Shown here one piece after another: positions 25,304 through 62,548 of a stretch of 64,000 nt of DNA. Numbering within the stretch: the stretch's first letter is position 1; each line of letters opens with the position of its first letter. The position numbers and the translations under genes are program-made. The notes beneath the pieces are model-generated. The model had not been told where the DNA came from and made no database searches. It worked only from the letters and a program-made list of their open reading frames with translations. Location of the stretch: positions 62,001 to 126,000 of IMG/VR virus record IMGVR_UViG_3300002143_000235; one strand, written 5' to 3'.

Positions 25304-25579
25304 ATGGGTCGGATTTTTATCGATAAGGCAAAGAGTACAGCTTATTTCTTTCCAATCCCAACATTGGGATTGAAGATCAAGTGGGAGAAGCCAGTCGTGA
25401 TTGAACCAGTAATTCCTATCACACCTGATGATATTCGTACCAAATTTCTTCATTATATTGAAGAAATTTCAACACGTGAAACAGACCGACCGGATGCAAT
25501 TTCTGTATCTAGTGGTGTTGGAGTAGAATTCTTTAACATGCCTGAATTTAGACATAATGGTGTATTTGGAGCAGTGTGA
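25304..25579 (+). CDS. Hypothetical protein; frame stays open to 25759 after the TGA
   Basis: Track ORF plus 59 further sense codons. Confidence 0.55.
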   Translation: MGRIFIDKAKSTAYFFPIPTLGLKIKWEKPVVIEPVIPITPDDIRTKFLHYIEEISTRETDRPDAISVSSGVGVEFFNMPEFRHNGVFGAV

Positions 25580-25768
25580 TATGCCTTAGATATACCATTA
25601 TGTCTAAATTTTGATGTGTGGCAGTTATGCGGACAGTACAAGTGTATCAATATCTATATAAATCCATACCAAATAGGTGATAGTATCATCCACGAATGGA
25701 CGGATGGAAAACATATAAATACTGTTCCAGACCTCTTCACAGAAGAAAAAAAAATATAATTTTATAAT

Positions 25769-27001: not shown

Positions 27002-28489
27002 ATGATAGTAGATTACGAATACCTCAATGGCAAACTAATAGTGTCATACATTGACCCTAAAGGTAATATCAAATTCAAAAATTATCCATGGATGAATCCA
27101 ATGGATTGGAGAGTATGTTCCAATACTGATCCAGGAAGATCTGATAACTTCCGCACCTGGGATAAGAAACCAGTGAAATTAATGAGCACACGAAATCCTA
27201 CACGTTATGCTGTTTACGAATACTTCCACAAACTCAAACAAGAAGAGAAAGATGAAATATTCGCCTACAATGAGCCAAAGACTTATTTCTGTGATATTGA
27301 GGTAGAAATTACAAATGGTTTTCCTGAAGCTCATTTAGCTGAAAATAGAGTTACCGCGATCTGTTTTGTATTCGATCAGAAAATTCTATTAATGGGTATA
27401 AAAGAGATGCCTGATAGTTGGATTACTAAGATGGAAAAAGATATCAATGAATACTTTAAAGCATTTGATACCAAGTACACAATCGATTGGCAATTCTACA
27501 ATACAGAAAAAGAGATGCTTTTAGAGTTATTCAACGATCTTATTCCAAAAATGCCTGTAATTACTGGATGGAATTTCATTAACTATGACTGGGTTTATTT
27601 AGTAACACGTGCACGTAAATTAGGAATCAATCCAAACGTTGCATCACCAACCGGTAAATTGATCAAACCATGGAAAAAGAATGCTAACGAATTCAAACCA
27701 ACATTTGAAGAACTTCCTATGCATAGACTAGTAGTCGATTACATGGATATCTTTGGTAAATGGGATACATCAATCAAAATACGTGAAGCTGAAACATTAG
27801 ACTTTACCTCATCAAAAGTATTAGGAGTTAAGAAACTTGAATATAAAGGTTCACTTAAGGATTTATACGTAAACGATTACTATGGTTATATGCTTTATAA
27901 CTGTGTTGATACCGCGCTCGTACAATTGATACATAAGAAGCAACGTACATTAGATATCATGTTATCAATATCTAATCTTGCAAATATACAAATAGGCCAA
28001 TCACTTTCAGCTATTCGTGTAACCGAAGGTGTTTTCTTCCGAGAGTATTACGAACACGGAATTGTGATGTGTCGTCAAACAAGTATGTTCTCTGAATCTG
28101 GAAATGATCAAGCTGAGGAAATGGATGATTACGATGGTGGTTACGTTAAATTTCCAACTATTGGACTTTTTAGATGGATTTCAGTATTCGATTTTGCCTC
28201 GCTGTATCCTACTACTATGCGTCAGTTCAATATCGCACCTGAATCCTTCAAAGGACTCAAAATAAGCGATTCTGAGTCACTTTTAAACGGTGTGCGATAT
28301 CCATTAGAGAAAGATGATATTGTGCTCTTAAATGGAGCCGTATTCAAAAATGAAGAATCTAAAACTAAGATGAAGATTACACAAATCTTTAAAGATAGAA
28401 AAGTGAACAAAAATAGTGGTCTTGACTACAAGAAACAAGAACAACTCATGAAGATGTATCTACAAGATCGTAAAAAGAAAAGAGCATAA
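27002..28489 (+). CDS. gp43: Family B DNA polymerase, N-terminal subunit (3'-5' exonuclease + motif A)
   Basis: ExoI CDIEVE, ExoII GWNFINYD, ExoIII YNCVD, motif A DFASLYP; no NSxYG or DTDS. Confidence 0.9.
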   Translation: MIVDYEYLNGKLIVSYIDPKGNIKFKNYPWMNPMDWRVCSNTDPGRSDNFRTWDKKPVKLMSTRNPTRYAVYEYFHKLKQEEKDEIFAYNEPKTYFCDIEVEITNGFPEAHLAENRVTAICFVFDQKILLMGIKEMPDSWITKMEKDINEYFKAFDTKYTIDWQFYNTEKEMLLELFNDLIPKMPVITGWNFINYDWVYLVTRARKLGINPNVASPTGKLIKPWKKNANEFKPTFEELPMHRLVVDYMDIFGKWDTSIKIREAETLDFTSSKVLGVKKLEYKGSLKDLYVNDYYGYMLYNCVDTALVQLIHKKQRTLDIMLSISNLANIQIGQSLSAIRVTEGVFFREYYEHGIVMCRQTSMFSESGNDQAEEMDDYDGGYVKFPTIGLFRWISVFDFASLYPTTMRQFNIAPESFKGLKISDSESLLNGVRYPLEKDDIVLLNGAVFKNEESKTKMKITQIFKDRKVNKNSGLDYKKQEQLMKMYLQDRKKKRA

Positions 28490-28490
28490 T

Positions 28491-28967
28491 ATGAAAACAC
28501 AAAAAATTGCAATGAATATTGTTAATCAATTGTATGATCTTGCAGACGTATCAGTTGATAAGAGACAAGCAATAAATGATCAAGCTGATAAATTTGTATC
28601 TGAAATGCTTGTTCAATTTTTACAATCTATTGTTAGTACAAAAGAGAAACCAAAAGAAGGTAAATATACCGATGTTGAATGCGCTGAAATAATGCAATCA
28701 CGTGGTTATACAAAACACCATACAGCAGGTACCACAACCGGTTGGAGTAAGTTAGTTGGTGAAATAGATGACCTTGATAGTATGTGGATATTTGCTGATG
28801 TTAATCATATAAATTCTACCATTGAATTGTCATGTGATCCTTTTAAAGGACTAATTCATTTGCGAAGTCCAGATCTTGCATTAGATCATCCACGATTTCA
28901 TTATTTTGAAGACAAATTGATTAGTTACATGAATGCTTGCAGATCAGTTCAACATGATCGATGTTAG
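28491..28967 (+). CDS. Hypothetical protein
   Basis: 158 aa; stop lies within GTTAGGC. Confidence 0.7.
   Translation: MKTQKIAMNIVNQLYDLADVSVDKRQAINDQADKFVSEMLVQFLQSIVSTKEKPKEGKYTDVECAEIMQSRGYTKHHTAGTTTGWSKLVGEIDDLDSMWIFADVNHINSTIELSCDPFKGLIHLRSPDLALDHPRFHYFEDKLISYMNACRSVQHDRC
28850..28931 (+). repeat. 82-bp direct repeat, copy 1
   Basis: 7 mismatches versus 29783..29864 by manual alignment. Confidence 0.9.
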
Positions 28968-29014
28968 GCGATTGTGCCTTTATTTAGATTTTTAAACTTT
29001 AAATTAATATAAAA

Positions 29015-29449
29015 ATGAGTACAGAAAAACAAGATGGTGCAATTGATTTAACACCTAAAACAATTAAAGACAAGTCAAAATACAAATTGACAAATGCTGA
29101 TATTTCGGCAAATTATTTGAATGATAAATTTCATTTAATGATTAATGATTTCAAAGGCGCTTTTGTGTGTTGGGCTACAAAACAAAATCCAAATGAAACT
29201 TATGATGTAATTGCTGATGCTACACAAGCATACACAAAATACTTACAACAGCGATATTTCAAAACAAAGGATACTGTTATTGAAATGGATTGTGATTTAA
29301 TTAAAAAACTTACTGATGAAGATTTATTCATTGCTATTCCTGAAATATTAGCATTAAATGAAATGGAACCCGATTTTATTTGTTTGGGTGCTTTGTCAAG
29401 AAATGTGTTTTATGACATACTTCGCAGCCAAATCACTCAACCATTGTAG
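29015..29449 (+). CDS. Hypothetical cassette-1 protein
   Basis: 144 aa. Confidence 0.7.
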   Translation: MSTEKQDGAIDLTPKTIKDKSKYKLTNADISANYLNDKFHLMINDFKGAFVCWATKQNPNETYDVIADATQAYTKYLQQRYFKTKDTVIEMDCDLIKKLTDEDLFIAIPEILALNEMEPDFICLGALSRNVFYDILRSQITQPL

Positions 29450-29467
29450 GGTGTCGCTTGGCATATC

Positions 29468-29598
29468 GCCTAACGTTTTGCAACTTGGCTTAGTGCCGTT
29501 TAAACAGATAAATTAAATTAATAACACAAATATTATGAGTACAGAAAATGATTGCGAAAAAGAAGAAACTAAGGCATTGAGCCAAATTGCTGTTAGCG
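29468..29598 (+). repeat. attC-like site (about 131 bp)
   Basis: GCCTAAC, then GCAACTTGGCTTAGTGCC pairing with GGCATTGAGCCAAATTGC, then GTTAGCG. Confidence 0.65.
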
Positions 29599-29783
29599 GT
29601 AGTACTTGCTTTAGTAAAGATGCTTTTATGTTGGTAGAACATATTAACAACGATTCTGATGAAAAAGAATATGGCGATGTAATTGGAGAAACACAAGGTT
29701 ATTTTATTGTTAAACCACACCTAAGAAAAGAACAGAATCGTTGGTTAAAAGTGGATTGTAATGTGTTGGAGTATTACCGCTAA
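29535..29783 (+). CDS. Hypothetical cassette-2 protein
   Basis: Starts in the attC loop; TAA stop lies inside TACCGCTAAC. Confidence 0.7.
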   Translation: MSTENDCEKEETKALSQIAVSGSTCFSKDAFMLVEHINNDSDEKEYGDVIGETQGYFIVKPHLRKEQNRWLKVDCNVLEYYR

Positions 29784-29864
29784 CTAATCCATTTACGTAG
29801 TCCAGATCTTGCATTAGACCATCCACGATTTAATTATTTTGAAAACAAACTGATTAGTTACATG
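29783..29864 (+). repeat. 82-bp direct repeat, copy 2 (3' gene remnant)
   Basis: Encodes LIHLRSPDLALDHPRFNYFENKLISYM*. Confidence 0.9.
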
Positions 29865-29893
29865 TAGAACTGTTTAACATCAATAAATTTATA

Positions 29894-30301
29894 ATGCAGA
29901 TTAAAAAAGGAACAACACGGATTGTATTTCTAATTGGTAAATACGCAATCAAATTTCCACGCATTCATCATAAATATCCTGGACATCGTTACAAAATGTT
30001 TTTACGCGGATTACTAGCCAATATAGATGAAAATTTTTGGTGGAAAAGCACATACAAGCGTGATAAATTATGTCCAGTTAAATTCAAATCACCTCTTGGA
30101 TTTTTTCTTGTAATGGATAGAGCTATCCCACTTAAAGAATCGGAATACAACAAAGAACAATTTGAAAAAGATTTTTTTGGTTTACCACTTGATAACAAGA
30201 TTGTAAATTTTGGAAAGATCGATAATCGCATTGTGTTAATTGATTATGCTGATAGTCGATATATGTGTAGTGATTGTTCTATGTGTTTCAAAAATAAATA
30301 A
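29894..30301 (+). CDS. Minimal protein-kinase-like protein
   Basis: YAIKFP (VAIK), LDNKIVN (DxxxxN), LIDYA (DFG-like). Confidence 0.5.
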   Translation: MQIKKGTTRIVFLIGKYAIKFPRIHHKYPGHRYKMFLRGLLANIDENFWWKSTYKRDKLCPVKFKSPLGFFLVMDRAIPLKESEYNKEQFEKDFFGLPLDNKIVNFGKIDNRIVLIDYADSRYMCSDCSMCFKNK

Positions 30302-30306
30302 TTTTT

Positions 30307-30361
30307 AAAAAAGATGCCGCGGCATCTTTTTTTTATTATATTTGTACTGTTCAATTAATAA
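30307..30361 (+). promoter_or_regulatory. Terminator hairpin + early promoter + conserved leader, cassette D
   Basis: AAAAGATGCC/GGCATCTTTT, TATATTTG at 30337, TACTGTTCAATTAATAA. Confidence 0.75.
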
Positions 30362-30364
30362 ATT

Positions 30365-30922
30365 ATGCATATAAAAGTAGTAACACTCGATGGTATTGAT
30401 GCTGTAAAATTTCTTTACAATGGTGGAATGCCAAAAGATATATCACTAAATGATCGAATCCGTTTCTTCTCTTTTAGAGAAATGTCATGTCTAGGTAAGG
30501 ACCAAGAATTTTATTCTTTTTTGATGACTGGAAAAAAAATTATTGGTATTGCACATGTTGGTTATTATTCTATGAATGCTAAGAATAAAAATAATTGGTC
30601 TATTAGTTATCTTAGTATAGACAAAGACTATCGAATGAAAGGTTATTCTACATTGCTAGTAGAAGAAGTATTTTGTGAAGCACAAAAACGAGATTTAGAA
30701 ATATCTACTTCGTCATATACTGTTTTAGGAAAAGAACACCTTCAAAAAAGATTTAATGCTGCAGCAATTAAATTTGATGTAACATTTTATGATAAAACAA
30801 ATGAAGCTAGCCTTATAGATGCTGATTGGATGTATACTATTATTGATGGCAAAAAACTTCATAATGATGAATGTAATGGATGGGATAAGAAAAAGAAAAA
30901 GAAAATTGGTATTGTGTTTTAA
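30365..30922 (+). CDS. GNAT-family acetyltransferase
   Basis: ISYLSIDKDYRMKGYSTLL (motif A R/QxxGxG/S). Confidence 0.8.
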   Translation: MHIKVVTLDGIDAVKFLYNGGMPKDISLNDRIRFFSFREMSCLGKDQEFYSFLMTGKKIIGIAHVGYYSMNAKNKNNWSISYLSIDKDYRMKGYSTLLVEEVFCEAQKRDLEISTSSYTVLGKEHLQKRFNAAAIKFDVTFYDKTNEASLIDADWMYTIIDGKKLHNDECNGWDKKKKKKIGIVF

Positions 30923-30924
30923 AT

Positions 30925-30951
30925 AAAAAACCCACTCGAAAGAGTGGGTTT
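30925..30951. terminator. Bidirectional terminator
   Basis: AAACCCACTC-GAAA-GAGTGGGTTT between convergent GNAT and capsid genes. Confidence 0.85.
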
Positions 30952-30969
30952 CTATATTTTTGGGCCTTA

Positions 30970-32721
30970 TTAGTTAAGGATACCGTTGTTGTCTTCAACT
31001 TTGATTGCCATGTACTGTTTTTCCGGAAACCACCCGAACTCTGCGACAGCAAATCGTGAGTACATGTAAAGGTGTGGAGCCATAGTCTTTTCAGACACAA
31101 CATCAACGCTTTCTGCAAGCATATAAGCGAAGAATTTGATACCTGGTTCGTCAGCTTTACCAACACGTCCTAAGTAGATAGTTAAATCTTCTGGACGTTG
31201 GTAAGGGTCAACGTATACTTTGATACCGTTGATTGTACCAGCTGGTTGAAGTTGTCCTTCACCGAATTTCGCGTTGAATGGGTTAATGATATAACCAGCG
31301 ATGTCGTTGAAAAGAGCAGCAATACCTCCAGATGTTACGATGTAATCAGCAGTACCGATACGACCGTCAGTCTTGATGTAGAAAGAAGCTTTCGTAATCG
31401 TAGACCAGATCTTACGTGCAAGTGAAGCGTAGTTTTCACCACCAAGAGCACCAGACACAGCTGTTACAGAAACGTCATAGATCTTACCGTCAGTGATACC
31501 AGCAGCAGTTAATGCAGCTAATGAAGCACCTGTAGCAGAAGCAAGAGATGCACGGTTTTTAAGTCCGAATTCTTTTACTTTATTAACGATCTCAACAGAG
31601 ATTTTTTGTTGGATTTGGTTAACTAATTGAGCTTTTGTTTGTTCAACTAAGTCAATGTTGTACATTCTTTTGAAATCACCAAGCTCAGAAAGACGAAGTG
31701 CTCCAGATACGTGTACGTGACCAATTTGAATTGTAGCAACACGCATTTCAGGTCCAACTTTACCAGCTTGTGAAACATCCCACTCACCACGGTTCATTAA
31801 TCCGTCTTTACCTGAAGAAGTAAAGTCAAGAACTAAGTCTTCGTTAAGTGATACTGGAAGTACAGTATTAACAGCACCTACAGCGTTATCAACAAGTCCA
31901 CCATTTGTTGGAGCTTCAAAAGTTGCAGCACCAAGGTGTGTTAAGATATCACCAGTATTAGGGAATGTGTTAAGTGCAGCGTTGAATCCCCAACCACCTG
32001 ACGATGCAGAGTTTTGTTGAGTGAAGAAACGCAAGATTGGAAGACCATCGATACGAGAGAAACCTTCAAACTTAACAACTCCTGTTTTAGTAGCAGGTTC
32101 AACAGTTGGATCATAACCACCTACAGCAGCAGGTAATGCACCACCAGAAAGTTGGAAGTAAAGTCCTTTTGAAACACCACCACGTGTTTCAGTTACACCG
32201 TATGCTGTCATTGCTGTACGAATCCAAACCTTAAGGTCTGCTAAGTCAGCATCAGCTGTTGGACGGAATTTGATAACCGAACCACGTTCATCTGTTTGAC
32301 CAGTTGTAACGTTGTCATACTGCCAGTCAAAGAATGGGTAATCGATACGGTTAGAGTTTACGTTGATCACAGGAACAAGATCAAGACCTGGTGTGTGAGC
32401 AGCGATTTTTAATGATGGAGGAAGCATTTGTTGTGCCAAGTCACCTGAACCGAATGAACCATTTTGTCCTGGGATTGGGTTAACACCTGGATTAACTACA
32501 GCACCCATACCTTGTGTATTTGCACCATTAGCATACATTGCATTCTCATTTACACCACCGAAACCAGCAGCAATAGAAGTTGAGTGCATTTCAGCGTATT
32601 CACAAAGTGAACGTAATTTAGCAGGGTCAGTTAACTCAGTAACACCTAAACGTTCAACGATTGGTTTCCAACGTGTGATCGCACGATCCATGTCAACTAC
32701 CAAATTTGAATTTTTTATCAT
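30970..32721 (-). CDS. gp23: Major capsid protein, T4 gp23-like
   Basis: GLDLVPV, GTINGIKVYVDPY, FFAYM...SRFAV gp23-type motifs; adjacent to protease and portal. Confidence 0.9.
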   Translation of the reverse strand: MIKNSNLVVDMDRAITRWKPIVERLGVTELTDPAKLRSLCEYAEMHSTSIAAGFGGVNENAMYANGANTQGMGAVVNPGVNPIPGQNGSFGSGDLAQQMLPPSLKIAAHTPGLDLVPVINVNSNRIDYPFFDWQYDNVTTGQTDERGSVIKFRPTADADLADLKVWIRTAMTAYGVTETRGGVSKGLYFQLSGGALPAAVGGYDPTVEPATKTGVVKFEGFSRIDGLPILRFFTQQNSASSGGWGFNAALNTFPNTGDILTHLGAATFEAPTNGGLVDNAVGAVNTVLPVSLNEDLVLDFTSSGKDGLMNRGEWDVSQAGKVGPEMRVATIQIGHVHVSGALRLSELGDFKRMYNIDLVEQTKAQLVNQIQQKISVEIVNKVKEFGLKNRASLASATGASLAALTAAGITDGKIYDVSVTAVSGALGGENYASLARKIWSTITKASFYIKTDGRIGTADYIVTSGGIAALFNDIAGYIINPFNAKFGEGQLQPAGTINGIKVYVDPYQRPEDLTIYLGRVGKADEPGIKFFAYMLAESVDVVSEKTMAPHLYMYSRFAVAEFGWFPEKQYMAIKVEDNNGILN

Positions 32722-61700: not shown

Positions 61701-62548
61701 ATATTACAGGTAAACGTAAGAACTGTATAGCATTCTTAAATATGCCAAGTGCTAAGATGTTCCGTGATTCAAGCAATCCTTCATTCATCAATGATGATAA
61801 CACGCTTAACCTTGAATACGTTCGTTTAGGTGGTAATCCAGATCAAAACCCTGCATTCCTTTACTCGTTTGCTCAAGGTGATGGTAATGATGATGGTCGT
61901 GATACAGTTGGTTACTTCTTCCCATATGTTGGAATCAGTGACAACGGACGTCCTATGGATTTCCCACCAGCTGCTTACGTATGTAATACATACATGCGCA
62001 AAAATAACTCTGCAATCCCAGGTAAGTACAACTTTACAGTTGCTGCTGGTACTGAAGATGGACGCGTTCTTGGAATCGCTGGTACTGAAATGAACTTCAC
62101 TGAAGATGATTACGTATCAATGAATCAAATGGGATCAAACCCAATCTCTTACGCTAAGAACATTGGATGGTATATTGAAACTGAATACACAGCTTCTCAA
62201 GCACCTAAATCAGCATTGTCTTACTTACACGTACGTGAGATCTTGATTGACCTTGAGAACGAGCTTTACGCAATGTTGTTCAAGTACCAATACAAGTTCA
62301 ACATTCCAGCTGTAAGAGCTAAAATCAAACGTGAGGCTGATGACATCTGTCAGAAATACCTTGATCGTTCTGCAATCACTGCGTTCACGAACGTAATTGA
62401 TGATACGAATAACACTGCCGATCTTATCGACAACCAATTCGGTCTATTGAATACATACATCACACCGGTACGAGCTATGGCAACTATCGTCAACGTGATC
62501 GGTATCCAATCAAACGGAGCAGTTGGTACAAGTACAGGATTCAACTAA
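58742..62548 (+). CDS. gp18: Tail sheath protein, T4 gp18-like, 1268 aa
   Basis: RTGVFIEE N-terminus; C-terminal FFPYV...PPAAYV, NPI, LHVREILI, DDTNNT. Confidence 0.9.
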   Translation: MDFNMSDYNRTGVFIEEVNGSQFETQAPQETIINFVPGFSRKGTVFNRPVVIKSTADRKNTFGDIDRFLEKKGSYFHRTIDIALQTAPVQAMNLLKTTSLDQLNYASISLSAQYDNEAIATRQYDDFFNKAGFWQRDTDSFLAFAKDTEHMIHFTNVSDKKISFFLFKSAASGFDITAETWYGGKDNVPTWMNYNDLISDYMVRLVVVGGDWSNYPMLGADTNWSKYFNGSGLRKNKVDDFIRDRNVSLLADYTASLIPYFTVNNRNIFIETLVNTQTDKTGLFCSFDITAVETDLPNGNIDIIGQTLVGLEKSKINFMSYQDTIEEVDSYETTALDTLGNVIGIDSISGRTAVNTNGNISGMVNVALVGPTTATPSMTFVSLGSAIINNASVAITGTVAFTAITGTVGVGNSFYRIDTVYVAPTGALTVLDGTPVEFVSGTAIGAVTGLTFPANYPNNSIVLGYIFREKDDAGVYSAAYSAVAIQTGVSNNFVPLTIGTVGTDIIVAATATNILDMTFTGTAAATKAQYIEYRRLQFFTELVTKYVLANSIIIGAAGIKVDLTSASITHNMTSIIGDKNIVITVTSTDIRTAPAAGDFVFYYNDNEFTIGQLGIETRQTVTGTSGYGVVSKNSEFYQDFYNGMINTSDYFYEKAAVSTQPFTFIHFTDLTYPLAIGNYIVMHNTDAAAIGIGAGANTFNARFDANIVNKGVFTIGEGYANGVVGPIQTALGVALPLNHIAFSVTELVSNETVALGLDIFNQDRKAYLKMYSIGKNIKVDFCNDATLTAPFSIAGGLAAINTTINVYSGEASYEQTLEIEQHVSYVMTDNKALIDSVRYPEVKVGSYVRAYFDNSELEPGEYPKKFARIIKKTPWSGNATNGVQYSEITTDVKIDIADYSGDLQTTWYTTLESYVDTYKTVTLNGFNVQATSVPNNTETRQEEILNIIAKDTPLYKAITNKNTFNFRYLIDSFGLGLSEFSKQQLADITGKRKNCIAFLNMPSAKMFRDSSNPSFINDDNTLNLEYVRLGGNPDQNPAFLYSFAQGDGNDDGRDTVGYFFPYVGISDNGRPMDFPPAAYVCNTYMRKNNSAIPGKYNFTVAAGTEDGRVLGIAGTEMNFTEDDYVSMNQMGSNPISYAKNIGWYIETEYTASQAPKSALSYLHVREILIDLENELYAMLFKYQYKFNIPAVRAKIKREADDICQKYLDRSAITAFTNVIDDTNNTADLIDNQFGLLNTYITPVRAMATIVNVIGIQSNGAVGTSTGFN

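Follow-up and report, generated by a model that had tools for sequence, protein, structure and literature searches.

The region 28959-29784 of the window, by which we mean the whole 64,000-nt stretch analyzed here (positions 62,001 to 126,000 of IMG/VR record IMGVR_UViG_3300002143_000235), holds two small phage genes, ORF1 and ORF2, that are best explained as mobile gene cassettes of an integron-like site-specific recombination system widespread in Bacteroidota chromosomes and their phages. In the phage form of this system a hairpin of about 125 nt lies upstream of its own ORF, travels with it and often holds its start codon, while the cargo, mainly orphan DNA methyltransferases, appears to consist mostly of counter-defence genes. 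We hold this interpretation with reasonably good, but not complete, confidence, as it rests on comparative evidence and no recombination event was observed: among sequencing runs none was found to hold this phage, and only contigs of other organisms sharing single cassettes were recovered. The 314-kb genome itself has no array and encodes no recombinase (no PF00589 match), such that the two genes are orphan cassettes. The features of the region are collected in Table 1.

Table 1. Features in and around the cassette region (window coordinates).
Position	Strand	Feature	Supporting evidence
28491-28967	+	Resident phage gene ("gene A", 158 aa, unknown function), directly after the N-terminal half of a split family B DNA polymerase; its last two codons and its stop (TAG, 28965-67) now come from cassette DNA	ORF list; a 77%-identical homologue in relative L178 ends ..NACKSVQHDK*, and similarity to the window stops after CATGAT at 28958
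28850-28931	+	Copy 1 of the 82-nt direct repeat, encoding 27 residues near the C-terminus of gene A	Repeat search: 91% identity, spacing 933; differences are 5 synonymous and 2 conservative
28959-29474	+	ORF1 cassette body without its own upstream hairpin; starts CGAT plus GTTAGGCGAT (28963-72), ends with the own-end box ATCGCCTAAC (29465-74)	Similarity to loci L003, L006, L010, L016 and to contigs of four metagenomes begins at 28959 and ends 0-8 nt after TAAC
29015-29449	+	ORF1, 144 aa, Tad5-like (type I Thoeris inhibitor family)	Pfam PF25190 at 23.2 bits (E 8e-5), below the cut-off of 27; 12 of 15 homologues match at E <= 1e-3, best E 1.9e-7; 41 homologues, many with a precomputed PF25190 hit
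29471-29595	+	Hairpin element (TAACG...TGTTA), putative recombination site and 5' part of the ORF2 cassette; the loop holds ORF2's ATG (29535)	Covariance model R2, strand-specific; family covariation
29535-29783	+	ORF2, 82 aa, unknown function; codons 1-19 are encoded by the hairpin loop and 3' arm; the stop is the TAA of the terminal TAAC	41 homologues of about 80 aa; the part from VSGS to the end is conserved and the N-terminal ~18 aa vary; the GTTAGCGGTA and TACCGCTAAC boxes are kept in most homologue loci read, one has TACCACTAAC
29592-29601	+	Box after the hairpin (GTTAGCGGTA), start of the ORF2 cassette body and complementary to its end	Metagenome contigs that share the hairpin diverge right after 29595/29596
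29775-29784	+	Own-end box of the ORF2 cassette (TACCGCTAAC), marking the right end of cassette DNA; not followed by a hairpin	The deletion in near-identical relative L001 starts exactly after it; a metagenome contig diverges at 29786
29783-29864	+	Copy 2 of the 82-nt repeat, in frame with ORF2 behind its TAA, ending ..LISYM*	Absent from L001 and L178
29894-30301	+	phrog_4301 gene (135 aa), not part of the cassettes but part of the stretch that varies between relatives	PHROG hit 2.7e-20; truncated to 21 codons in L001 and absent from L178
30307-30332	+	Intrinsic terminator that closes the variable stretch	Conserved in L178, where it directly follows gene A

The original prediction had noted that each ORF is bracketed by its own exact 10-nt inverted pair, that the junction between the two forms an imperfect hairpin enclosing ORF2's ATG and first 19 codons, that ORF2 stops inside TAAC and that both ORFs begin alike, and this observation is confirmed in every particular. 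The pair around ORF2 extends to 14 of 15 positions, ATGAGTACAGAAAA starts both ORFs, and the ATG of ORF2 lies 57 nt, or 19 codons, before the GTTA box. In the hairpin TAACG 29471-75 pairs with TGTTA 29591-95, GCAA 29480-83 with TTGC 29587-90, and 29485-97 with 29573-85 (11 Watson-Crick and 2 G.T pairs), in agreement with the count of 15 Watson-Crick pairs, 2 G.T pairs and 1 mismatch given originally. The 82-nt direct repeat that brackets the whole unit had, however, been missed.

Taken alone, these features do not exclude chance. The genome contains about 440 exact 10-nt inverted pairs spaced 100-600 nt apart, against about 480 seeds in shuffled sequence, and the DNA folding energy of the hairpin has a z-score of only −0.67, so that single-sequence thermodynamics is not informative; on the other hand, the two pairs described here are the only ones of this kind in 314 kb that begin with GTTAG. 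The matter is settled by comparison. A covariance model (R2) trained on 145 hairpins from other, unrelated viral contigs scores 29468-29599 at 86.1 bits (E 3e-16), against 8.4 bits on the opposite strand. Hundreds of such hairpins separate small same-strand ORFs in arrays: model R1 finds 217 in 80 viral loci and R2 finds 157 in 80 bacterial loci. Across the family 95.2% of cells pair, as compared with 67.6% in shuffles, and there are 814 double changes against 234; of 24 pairs 17 show compensatory changes, while TAACG and TGTTA are near-invariant. With the recurring boundaries and the empty site described below, these results refute the notion of a chance pair of inverted repeats around two ordinary phage genes. 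A pattern scan of a genome collection also returned chance hits outside the Bacteroidota, as judged from our estimate of the expected number, but nearly all hits confirmed by the model were in Bacteroidota or related organisms. No relevant Rfam family was found (no match in 28000-31000).

The cassette rule of integrons, by which the two ends of each cassette are complementary to each other, is obeyed in the window (GTTAGGC..GCCTAAC and GTTAGCG..CGCTAAC) and throughout the family. When the 8 nt after each GTTA were compared with the 8 nt before the next TAAC, a mean of 5.77 of 8 positions were complementary and 67 of 141 cases reached 7, whereas comparisons within the same hairpin or between random pairs gave 2.5-2.6. 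The ORF1 unit recurs as a block of 633-637 nt with sharp ends at two TAAC boxes in L003, L006 and L016, with different neighbours everywhere, and metagenome contigs break at the same boxes. Thus two of the conditions that had been set in advance as capable of refuting the cassette interpretation, namely the absence of similar sites around other genes and an invariant cassette order, did not materialize: similar sites flank other genes in many genomes, and the neighbours of the ORF1 cassette differ from locus to locus. In L178 the site is empty, and the same comparison led us to reject the possibility that 28932-28958 is the remnant of an upstream hairpin, as this segment is the native end of gene A. 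Similarity between ORF2 and gene A beyond the repeat was also sought, and none that was significant was found. One irregularity remains at the left junction (28958/28959), which lies 4 nt before GTTA and not at a TAAC.

The interpretation offered in the original prediction, a cassette system in which the recombination site supplies translation initiation to whichever cassette follows, is only partly supported. The sites are integron-like, conserved and covarying, there is indeed no integrase in the window or the genome, and the hairpin supplies the start codon and about 19 N-terminal codons, a feature shared by 64 of 144 cassettes examined and 113 unique hairpins. It is not supported, however, that initiation is supplied to whichever cassette follows. 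A first test of which side the hairpin belongs to, based on shared bodies, yielded only 5 informative cases and was replaced by a flank test; in viral contigs there are 14 cases in which hairpin and downstream flank are shared without the upstream flank, and 0 of the reverse, so that the hairpin is linked to the ORF downstream of it, inside the same cassette, with the breakpoint at TAA|C. Nonetheless, nearly identical hairpins often sit between unrelated flanks on both sides (137 of 153 pairs), and L010 carries the ORF1 body behind a different hairpin, so breaks at GTTA, or hairpin homogenization, also occur.

Where a recombinase is present (16 of 16 loci) it lies at the TAAC end of the array, and in phage loci it is preceded by a conserved segment of ~60 nt after the last TAAC. 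It is XerA/XerC/XerD-like and lacks the insertion specific to IntI, a region held to enable single-strand attC recombination (PMC7790495): array-adjacent recombinases score 155-165 bits, in two stretches, against a cut-off of 265 for TIGR02249, and residues 180-241 of VchIntIA align to only 20 residues, about 40 being missing. In five array-bearing Bacteroidota genomes there is no match over the integron-integrase cut-off, and all matches skip profile positions ~180-237. Several nearly complete array-bearing phage records, and the genome studied here (rated 80% complete), encode no tyrosine recombinase, in which case the enzyme would have to act in trans.

These results bear on the alternative that the hairpins are canonical attC sites forming a CALIN (two or more attC sites close together without an integrase), dependent on an ordinary host IntI, and that the phage merely carries bacterial integron cassettes. 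In favour of this view, the boxes fit RYYYAAC/GTTRRRY, the cassette rule holds, bacterial arrays have the canonical ORF-then-site polarity, and CALINs with DNA methyltransferases among their cargo have been reported in virulent and temperate phages without an integrase, several having been recombined by IntI1 (Qi et al. 2023, PMC9892861). We consider it unlikely. Besides the recombinase evidence, published attC sites have an unpaired spacer of 5-6 nt on both arms and 2-3 extrahelical bases on the arm opposite the AAC of the recombined strand (PMC5027507), whereas the sites of this family have 5 unpaired nt on one arm only, directly 3' of TAACG on the strand whose AAC marks the breakpoint, plus one 1x1 mismatch. 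The published phage CALINs were called with canonical attC models and numbered only 17 in 10,705 phage genomes; the one Bacteroidota phage among them, Polaribacter phage P12002L, has no member of this family, and the phage cargo seen here is phage-serving. That study does not describe the family, its polarity, its recombinase or the hairpin-encoded start, nor did our literature searches, in a limited library that cannot exclude a prior description, find one.

Two near-invariant G.T pairs make one strand of the hairpin the better folder, and that strand is the same in phage arrays, where ORFs are on the hairpin-sense strand in 169 of 175 cases with the hairpin upstream, and in bacterial arrays, where they are antisense in 70 of 80; this argues for a role in DNA rather than in mRNA. 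The observation weighs against a second alternative, that the hairpins are RNA-level or regulatory elements (processing sites, translation control, terminators) and that genes are shuffled by ordinary homologous recombination between similar hairpins, like the promoter-early stem-loop (PeSL) cassettes of T4-type phages. PeSLs are promoter plus terminator units exchanged by homologous recombination, with a strong sigma-70-like early promoter joined to a terminator stem-loop; they are reported to separate small accessory genes in plastic regions of T4-like genomes, with small circles proposed as vectors (Arbiol et al. 2010). This view has some merit, as the genome is T4-like (gp23-like capsid), the hairpin in phage arrays is on the mRNA strand and encloses the start codon, G.U pairs are conserved, hairpin bases are similar between cassettes, which would allow homologous exchange, and the long direct repeats flanking the insert point to homologous recombination at the last step, and fit entry of a small circle. 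It does not explain, however, why the two ends of each cassette are complementary over 7-11 nt outside the hairpin, nor the fixed position of a recombinase at one end, and breaks are sharp where only TAACG is shared. Furthermore, no promoter-like site lies in 29471-29595 (those in the region number 5 against 12.3 expected) and no T-run follows the hairpin. We regard this alternative as unlikely too. Still less likely are hairpin-ended single-strand transposable units of the IS200/IS605 or REP/RAYT kind, cut next to TAAC by an HUH enzyme. Subterminal hairpins and a fixed short cleavage motif would fit, and a TnpB gene lies 1.8 kb from a Tad5 homologue in locus L018, but L018 has no hairpins of this family at E <= 0.01, this genome has no Y1 transposase (no PF01797 match), the arrays are polar with a tyrosine recombinase at one end, and own-end complementarity and tandem head-to-tail cassettes are not known as features of those elements.

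In the model that we favour, a phage-type cassette runs C, hairpin (about 120 nt inner part), GTTA plus 7-11 nt, ORF, the complement of those 7-11 nt, TAA, and joining its ends would close a long hairpin whose base is the paired TAAC/GTTA boxes. The loop would provide the translation start, and the 3' arm would be translated as a short N-terminal leader. The window would thus contain a fragment of an array: the ORF1 body, cut off from its own hairpin, and a complete ORF2 cassette. What the analysis shows is the existence of the hairpin family and its covariation, the complementarity of cassette ends, the recurrence and breakpoints of the ORF1 unit, the linkage of hairpin to downstream body, the position of the recombinase, the common strand in phages and bacteria, and the empty site. 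We infer, from sequence alone, that a tyrosine recombinase cuts the folded ORF-sense strand between A and C of TAAC and exchanges one strand with another hairpin or with a platform site next to its own gene, as integron integrases do with attC and attI; cassette excision and insertion by this enzyme, and the anti-Thoeris activity of ORF1, are likewise inferred. We also infer that the two cassettes arrived from another phage, probably as a ~933-nt circle or by unequal exchange that recombined through the 82-nt end of gene A and so duplicated it.

These results can be considered in relation to known systems. With integrons, including sedentary chromosomal ones, the arrays have in common head-to-tail cassettes, each with one imperfect hairpin site bounded by ..YAAC and GTTR.. 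boxes, one strand that folds better than the other, a tyrosine recombinase and platform site at one end (in related loci only), the order site, gene body, hairpin from the recombinase outward, and enormously diverse bodies with homogeneous hairpins, as in Vibrio VCRs. They differ in the recombinase, in the one-sided 5-nt bulge next to TAACG, in the hosts, which are Bacteroidota, and, in phages, in ORFs placed on the other strand, so that the site lies upstream rather than downstream of the gene, whereas the ORF of an integron cassette lies upstream of its attC and is expressed from a platform promoter. In Xer-dependent integration of folded single-stranded phage DNA (CTX phage and other IMEX) a Xer-type tyrosine recombinase also acts on a hairpin of one DNA strand that mimics a two-arm core site with an imperfect central region, but that case involves one attachment site per phage and integration at chromosomal dif, without arrays. 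It is possible, although we can only suggest it tentatively, that a second kind of integron exists, run by an XerA-like recombinase lacking the I2 helix domain on a distinct hairpin site and shared by Bacteroidota chromosomes and their phages, which phages use in reverse gene polarity as an exchangeable arsenal of counter-defence genes (orphan methyltransferases, Tad5-like proteins), with a site that doubles as a translation start and encodes a common N-terminal leader, and with cassettes leaking as orphans into unrelated phages such as this T4-like one.

Integrons are known as bacterial gene-capture devices, and their chromosomal arrays have recently been described as stores of anti-phage defence genes; the evidence here points to the mirror image, in which phages of Bacteroidota appear to keep cassettes loaded mostly with counter-defence genes, using the same type of site as their hosts' arrays but with genes on the other strand. 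This would give a concrete mechanism for the rapid turnover of anti-defence genes in phage accessory regions, and the hundreds of unannotated small ORFs in the arrays make them a way to find new anti-defence genes; the system also offers a test case for whether single-strand hairpin recombination needs the IntI-specific domain. For this genome, it explains a variable spot beside the DNA polymerase gene and marks ORF1 and ORF2 as candidate counter-defence genes. ORF1 and most of its homologues match the Tad5 profile over residues 42-117, the score of ORF1 itself being under the curated value; Tad3-6 are said to co-purify with ThsB (PMC13728456). A PADLOC analysis of 10 bacterial cassette proteins gave no hits.

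Finally, a scan of the genome with default filters recovered only the hairpin of the window, and a separate stem scan gave no further strong candidate except window 25534-25627, which scores only 12 bits and is not a member of the family. While the window has one complete hairpin and two further own-end boxes, two hairpins missed by the default filters are present in a second orphan locus at genome positions 273925-274350, a count that does not derive from an unfiltered scan of the whole genome; this locus is also flanked by a repeat, 99 nt long.

The record, of which the window comprises bases 62001-126000, is a viral sequence of 313,708 bp with 32% G+C. It has a gp23-like major capsid gene and a family B DNA polymerase that is split into two distant halves, and the unit studied here lies just downstream of the N-terminal half of the polymerase, after a gene of unknown function that we call gene A. 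The original prediction described two exact 10-nt inverted pairs, each bracketing one ORF, a common start shared by both ORFs (14 nt), the stop of ORF2 inside TAAC, and a hairpin containing the ATG of ORF2 in its loop and the next 19 codons in the loop and 3' arm; each of these statements is correct. Taken alone, however, this evidence is weak: exact 10-nt inverted pairs at a spacing of 100-600 nt are as frequent in the genome as in shuffled sequence, and the folding energy of the hairpin as DNA is ordinary (z-score of -0.67). Two features nevertheless stood out at once: these are the only two such pairs in the genome that begin GTTAG, and the whole unit is bracketed by an 82-nt direct repeat, which the original prediction had missed.

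Positions of the features discussed in the text
Feature	Sequence	Coordinates	Strand	Remarks
Family B DNA polymerase, N-terminal half	window	27002-28489		exonuclease and motif A half
Family B DNA polymerase, rest (C-terminal half)	genome	241565-242407		outside the window, about 150 kb away
Gene A	window	28491-28967		158 aa
gp23-like major capsid gene	window	30970-32721	minus
82-nt direct repeat	window	28850-28931 and 29783-29864		91% identical
First 10-nt inverted pair	window	28963-72 / 29465-74
Second 10-nt inverted pair	window	29592-601 / 29775-84
Hairpin	window	29471-29595		ATG of ORF2 at 29535
Cassette DNA	window	28959-29784
ORF2 cassette	window	29475-29784		complete
Terminator-like small hairpin	window	28953-28976		followed by a T-rich run
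ORF2 in frame with second repeat copy	window	29781-29866		separated by a single TAA
Near-perfect hairpin outside the family	window	25534-25627		26 bp, at the end of a 91-aa ORF
Second orphan cassette locus	genome	273925-274350		outside the window; L037:9525-9950
Extra C in ORF2 and deletion in the near-identical relative	L001	7025-7300
TnpB (OrfB_IS605) gene	L018	4423-5421
Examples of shared leaders in viral loci	L097; L107	11782-12705; 3048-4103
Cassette next to the recombinase ending in the ORF1 box	L066; L084	1547-1607; 7835-7895

ORF1 has 41 homologues, many of which carry the Pfam family Tad5, a type I Thoeris inhibitor, although ORF1 itself scores 23.2 bits, under the cut-off of 27. In IMG/VR and metagenome contigs the ORF1 DNA is 85-98% identical to that of the window while the flanks are unrelated, and the similarity stops exactly after ATCGCCTAAC on the right. 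In three of the loci that share this DNA (L003, L006 and L016) the common block is 633-637 nt long and runs from one TAAC box to the next. Contigs from four unrelated metagenomes match the window only over 28959-29482, over the ORF2 body, or over the hairpin, and their unmatched ends start at the boxes. In two phage loci (L066 and L084) the cassette next to the recombinase ends in the same ATCGCCTAAC box as the ORF1 cassette of the window, although its body is shorter. A biogas-reactor contig (L018) with a Tad5 homologue has no hairpins of the family described below; in this contig a TnpB gene lies 1.8 kb downstream of the homologue.

In the loci that share it, ORF1 sits in same-strand arrays of small ORFs separated by hairpins of 120-130 nt. 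An alignment of 14 of these hairpins gives 24 pairs, 17 of them with compensatory changes; TAACG and TGTTA are invariant, and five unpaired bases lie only on the 5' arm. A pattern scan of IMG/VR returned at least 120 stretches, and a first covariance model found 217 elements in 80 of these loci, with up to 13 per locus and always on one strand. On 145 of these elements, 95.2% of cells pair against 67.6% in shuffles, double changes number 814 against 234, and two G.T pairs are nearly invariant. A model built from these 145 elements, none of which comes from this genome, scores window positions 29468-29599 at 86.1 bits (E 3e-16), while the opposite strand scores 8.4 bits. A near-perfect hairpin elsewhere in the window (25534-25627), which is also flanked by TAAC and GTTA, scores only 12 bits with the family model and is not a member.

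The 8 nt that follow the GTTA of one hairpin are complementary to the 8 nt that precede the TAAC of the next: the mean is 5.77 of 8 positions, and 67 of 141 cases reach 7. When the comparison is made between the two flanks of one hairpin, with the next-but-one hairpin, or between random pairs, the mean is 2.5-2.6. This relationship is the hallmark of integron cassettes, and it is exactly what the original prediction had recognized in the window.

We next asked to which gene the hairpin belongs. Among 153 pairs of similar hairpins in different loci, 14 share the 30 nt after GTTA but not the 30 nt before TAAC, and none shows the reverse; thus, in viral contigs the unit consists of the hairpin plus the ORF downstream, with the break at TAA|C. 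The interpretation originally offered is therefore supported only in part: the reading as integron-like cassettes agrees with these data, but the idea that the site serves whichever cassette follows is contradicted. That hairpins are also homogenised or exchanged is shown by two observations: 137 of the 153 pairs share neither flank, and one locus (L010) carries the ORF1 body behind a different hairpin.

In 174 unique cassettes the sense ORF is longer than any antisense ORF in 170. The start codon lies in the hairpin loop in 64 cassettes and after GTTA in 78, while the stop is the TAA of TAAC in 35 of 144 and falls within 30 nt before it in 95. An in-loop ATG whose frame stays open through the box is present in 113 unique hairpins, in 105 of which GTTA is read in phase 0 or phase 2. 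Unrelated cassette proteins of the viral loci (L055-L134) share similar hairpin-encoded N-terminal leaders, with recurring motifs such as ..ALNKTDVSGS.. or ..PAFAKPVL.AV..; a role of the leader, for example in targeting, is no more than a possibility. The same is seen in the family of ORF2, whose members are about 80 aa long: the part from VSGS onward is conserved, the first ~18 residues vary, and some loci have lost the 5' arm.

Searches of this genome, whose record is rated 80% complete, returned no tyrosine recombinase, Y1 transposase or serine recombinase. Several near-complete array-bearing records also lack a tyrosine recombinase, while others have one. Homologues of a recombinase of 275-300 aa occur in 8 of 126 viral loci and in 8 of 120 bacterial loci, and in all 16 they lie beyond the last cassette at the TAAC end, with no hairpins further on. 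In six of the eight phage loci the last own-end box could be found, 60-120 nt before the recombinase and followed by a conserved segment. In the 8 phage loci the recombinase gene is always co-oriented with the cassettes, whereas in the bacterial arrays it points either way (5 opposite, in L209, L219, L267, L288 and L300, against 3 co-oriented, in L222, L256 and L286). The protein is closest to XerA, XerC and XerD; it matches the integron-integrase profile in two pieces, and lacks about 40 residues of the IntI-specific region. Five array-bearing Bacteroidota genomes have no integron integrase over the cut-off.

Arrays in genomes that were confirmed by the model are almost all in Bacteroidota, including Flavobacterium, Pedobacter, Chitinophagales and Sphingobacteriales. 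In bacteria the ORFs are antisense to the hairpin-sense strand in 70 of 80 cassettes, which is the canonical order of ORF then site, while in viral contigs they are sense in 169 of 175. Since the same strand carries the G.T pairs in both settings, the constraint appears to be on DNA rather than on mRNA. Of the 20 longest phage cassette proteins, 14 are orphan DNA methyltransferases and 3 have a PAPS-reductase domain; bacterial cargo is mixed.

These results can be interpreted by comparison with what is already known. On this comparative evidence the system works like an integron, and the bacterial arrays have integron cassette anatomy; however, it departs from integrons in two defining features, the IntI domain and the geometry of the unpaired bases of the site. 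CALINs in phages are published, but Polaribacter phage P12002L, a Bacteroidota phage with a published CALIN, has no member of this family, and we found no description of the family in the literature that could be searched. The family of sites obeys the cassette rule while differing from integrons in the associated recombinase and in the arrangement of its unpaired bases; in this window it is represented by orphan cassettes. The hairpin family, the complementarity of cassette ends, the recurring boundaries and the position of the recombinase are established by our comparisons, whereas recombination at these sites and the route by which the cassettes entered this genome are inferred.

As regards the latter, a relative (L178) has the order polymerase half, gene A, terminator, acetyltransferase gene, capsid gene, with nothing in between. 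Its similarity to the window ends at 28958, and this defines the left limit of the cassette DNA; the last two codons of gene A and its stop now come from the GTTAG box. The end of gene A and the GTTAGGCGAT box jointly form a terminator-like small hairpin. The ORF1 body has lost its own hairpin, while the TAAC that ends the ORF2 cassette is followed not by a hairpin but by the second copy of the end of gene A. ORF2 is in frame with this copy, and read-through of its TAA, for which there is no evidence, would add the 27-residue end of gene A. The near-identical IMG/VR relative L001 lacks 452 nt starting right after that TAAC and extending into the phrog_4301 gene, with TAAT microhomology; its single repeat copy is a hybrid of the two copies in the window, and its ORF2 has one extra C, which is either a frameshift or an assembly error. 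We infer entry by homologous recombination of a small circle, or by unequal exchange with a related phage, which would duplicate the shared segment. The second orphan locus of this genome is likewise bracketed by a repeat, 99 nt long, 86% identical and with a spacing of 979 nt; it has two hairpins, which score 72 and 34.8 bits with filters off and are missed with the default filters of Infernal, and one ORF of 63 aa that obeys the rule of complementary own ends.
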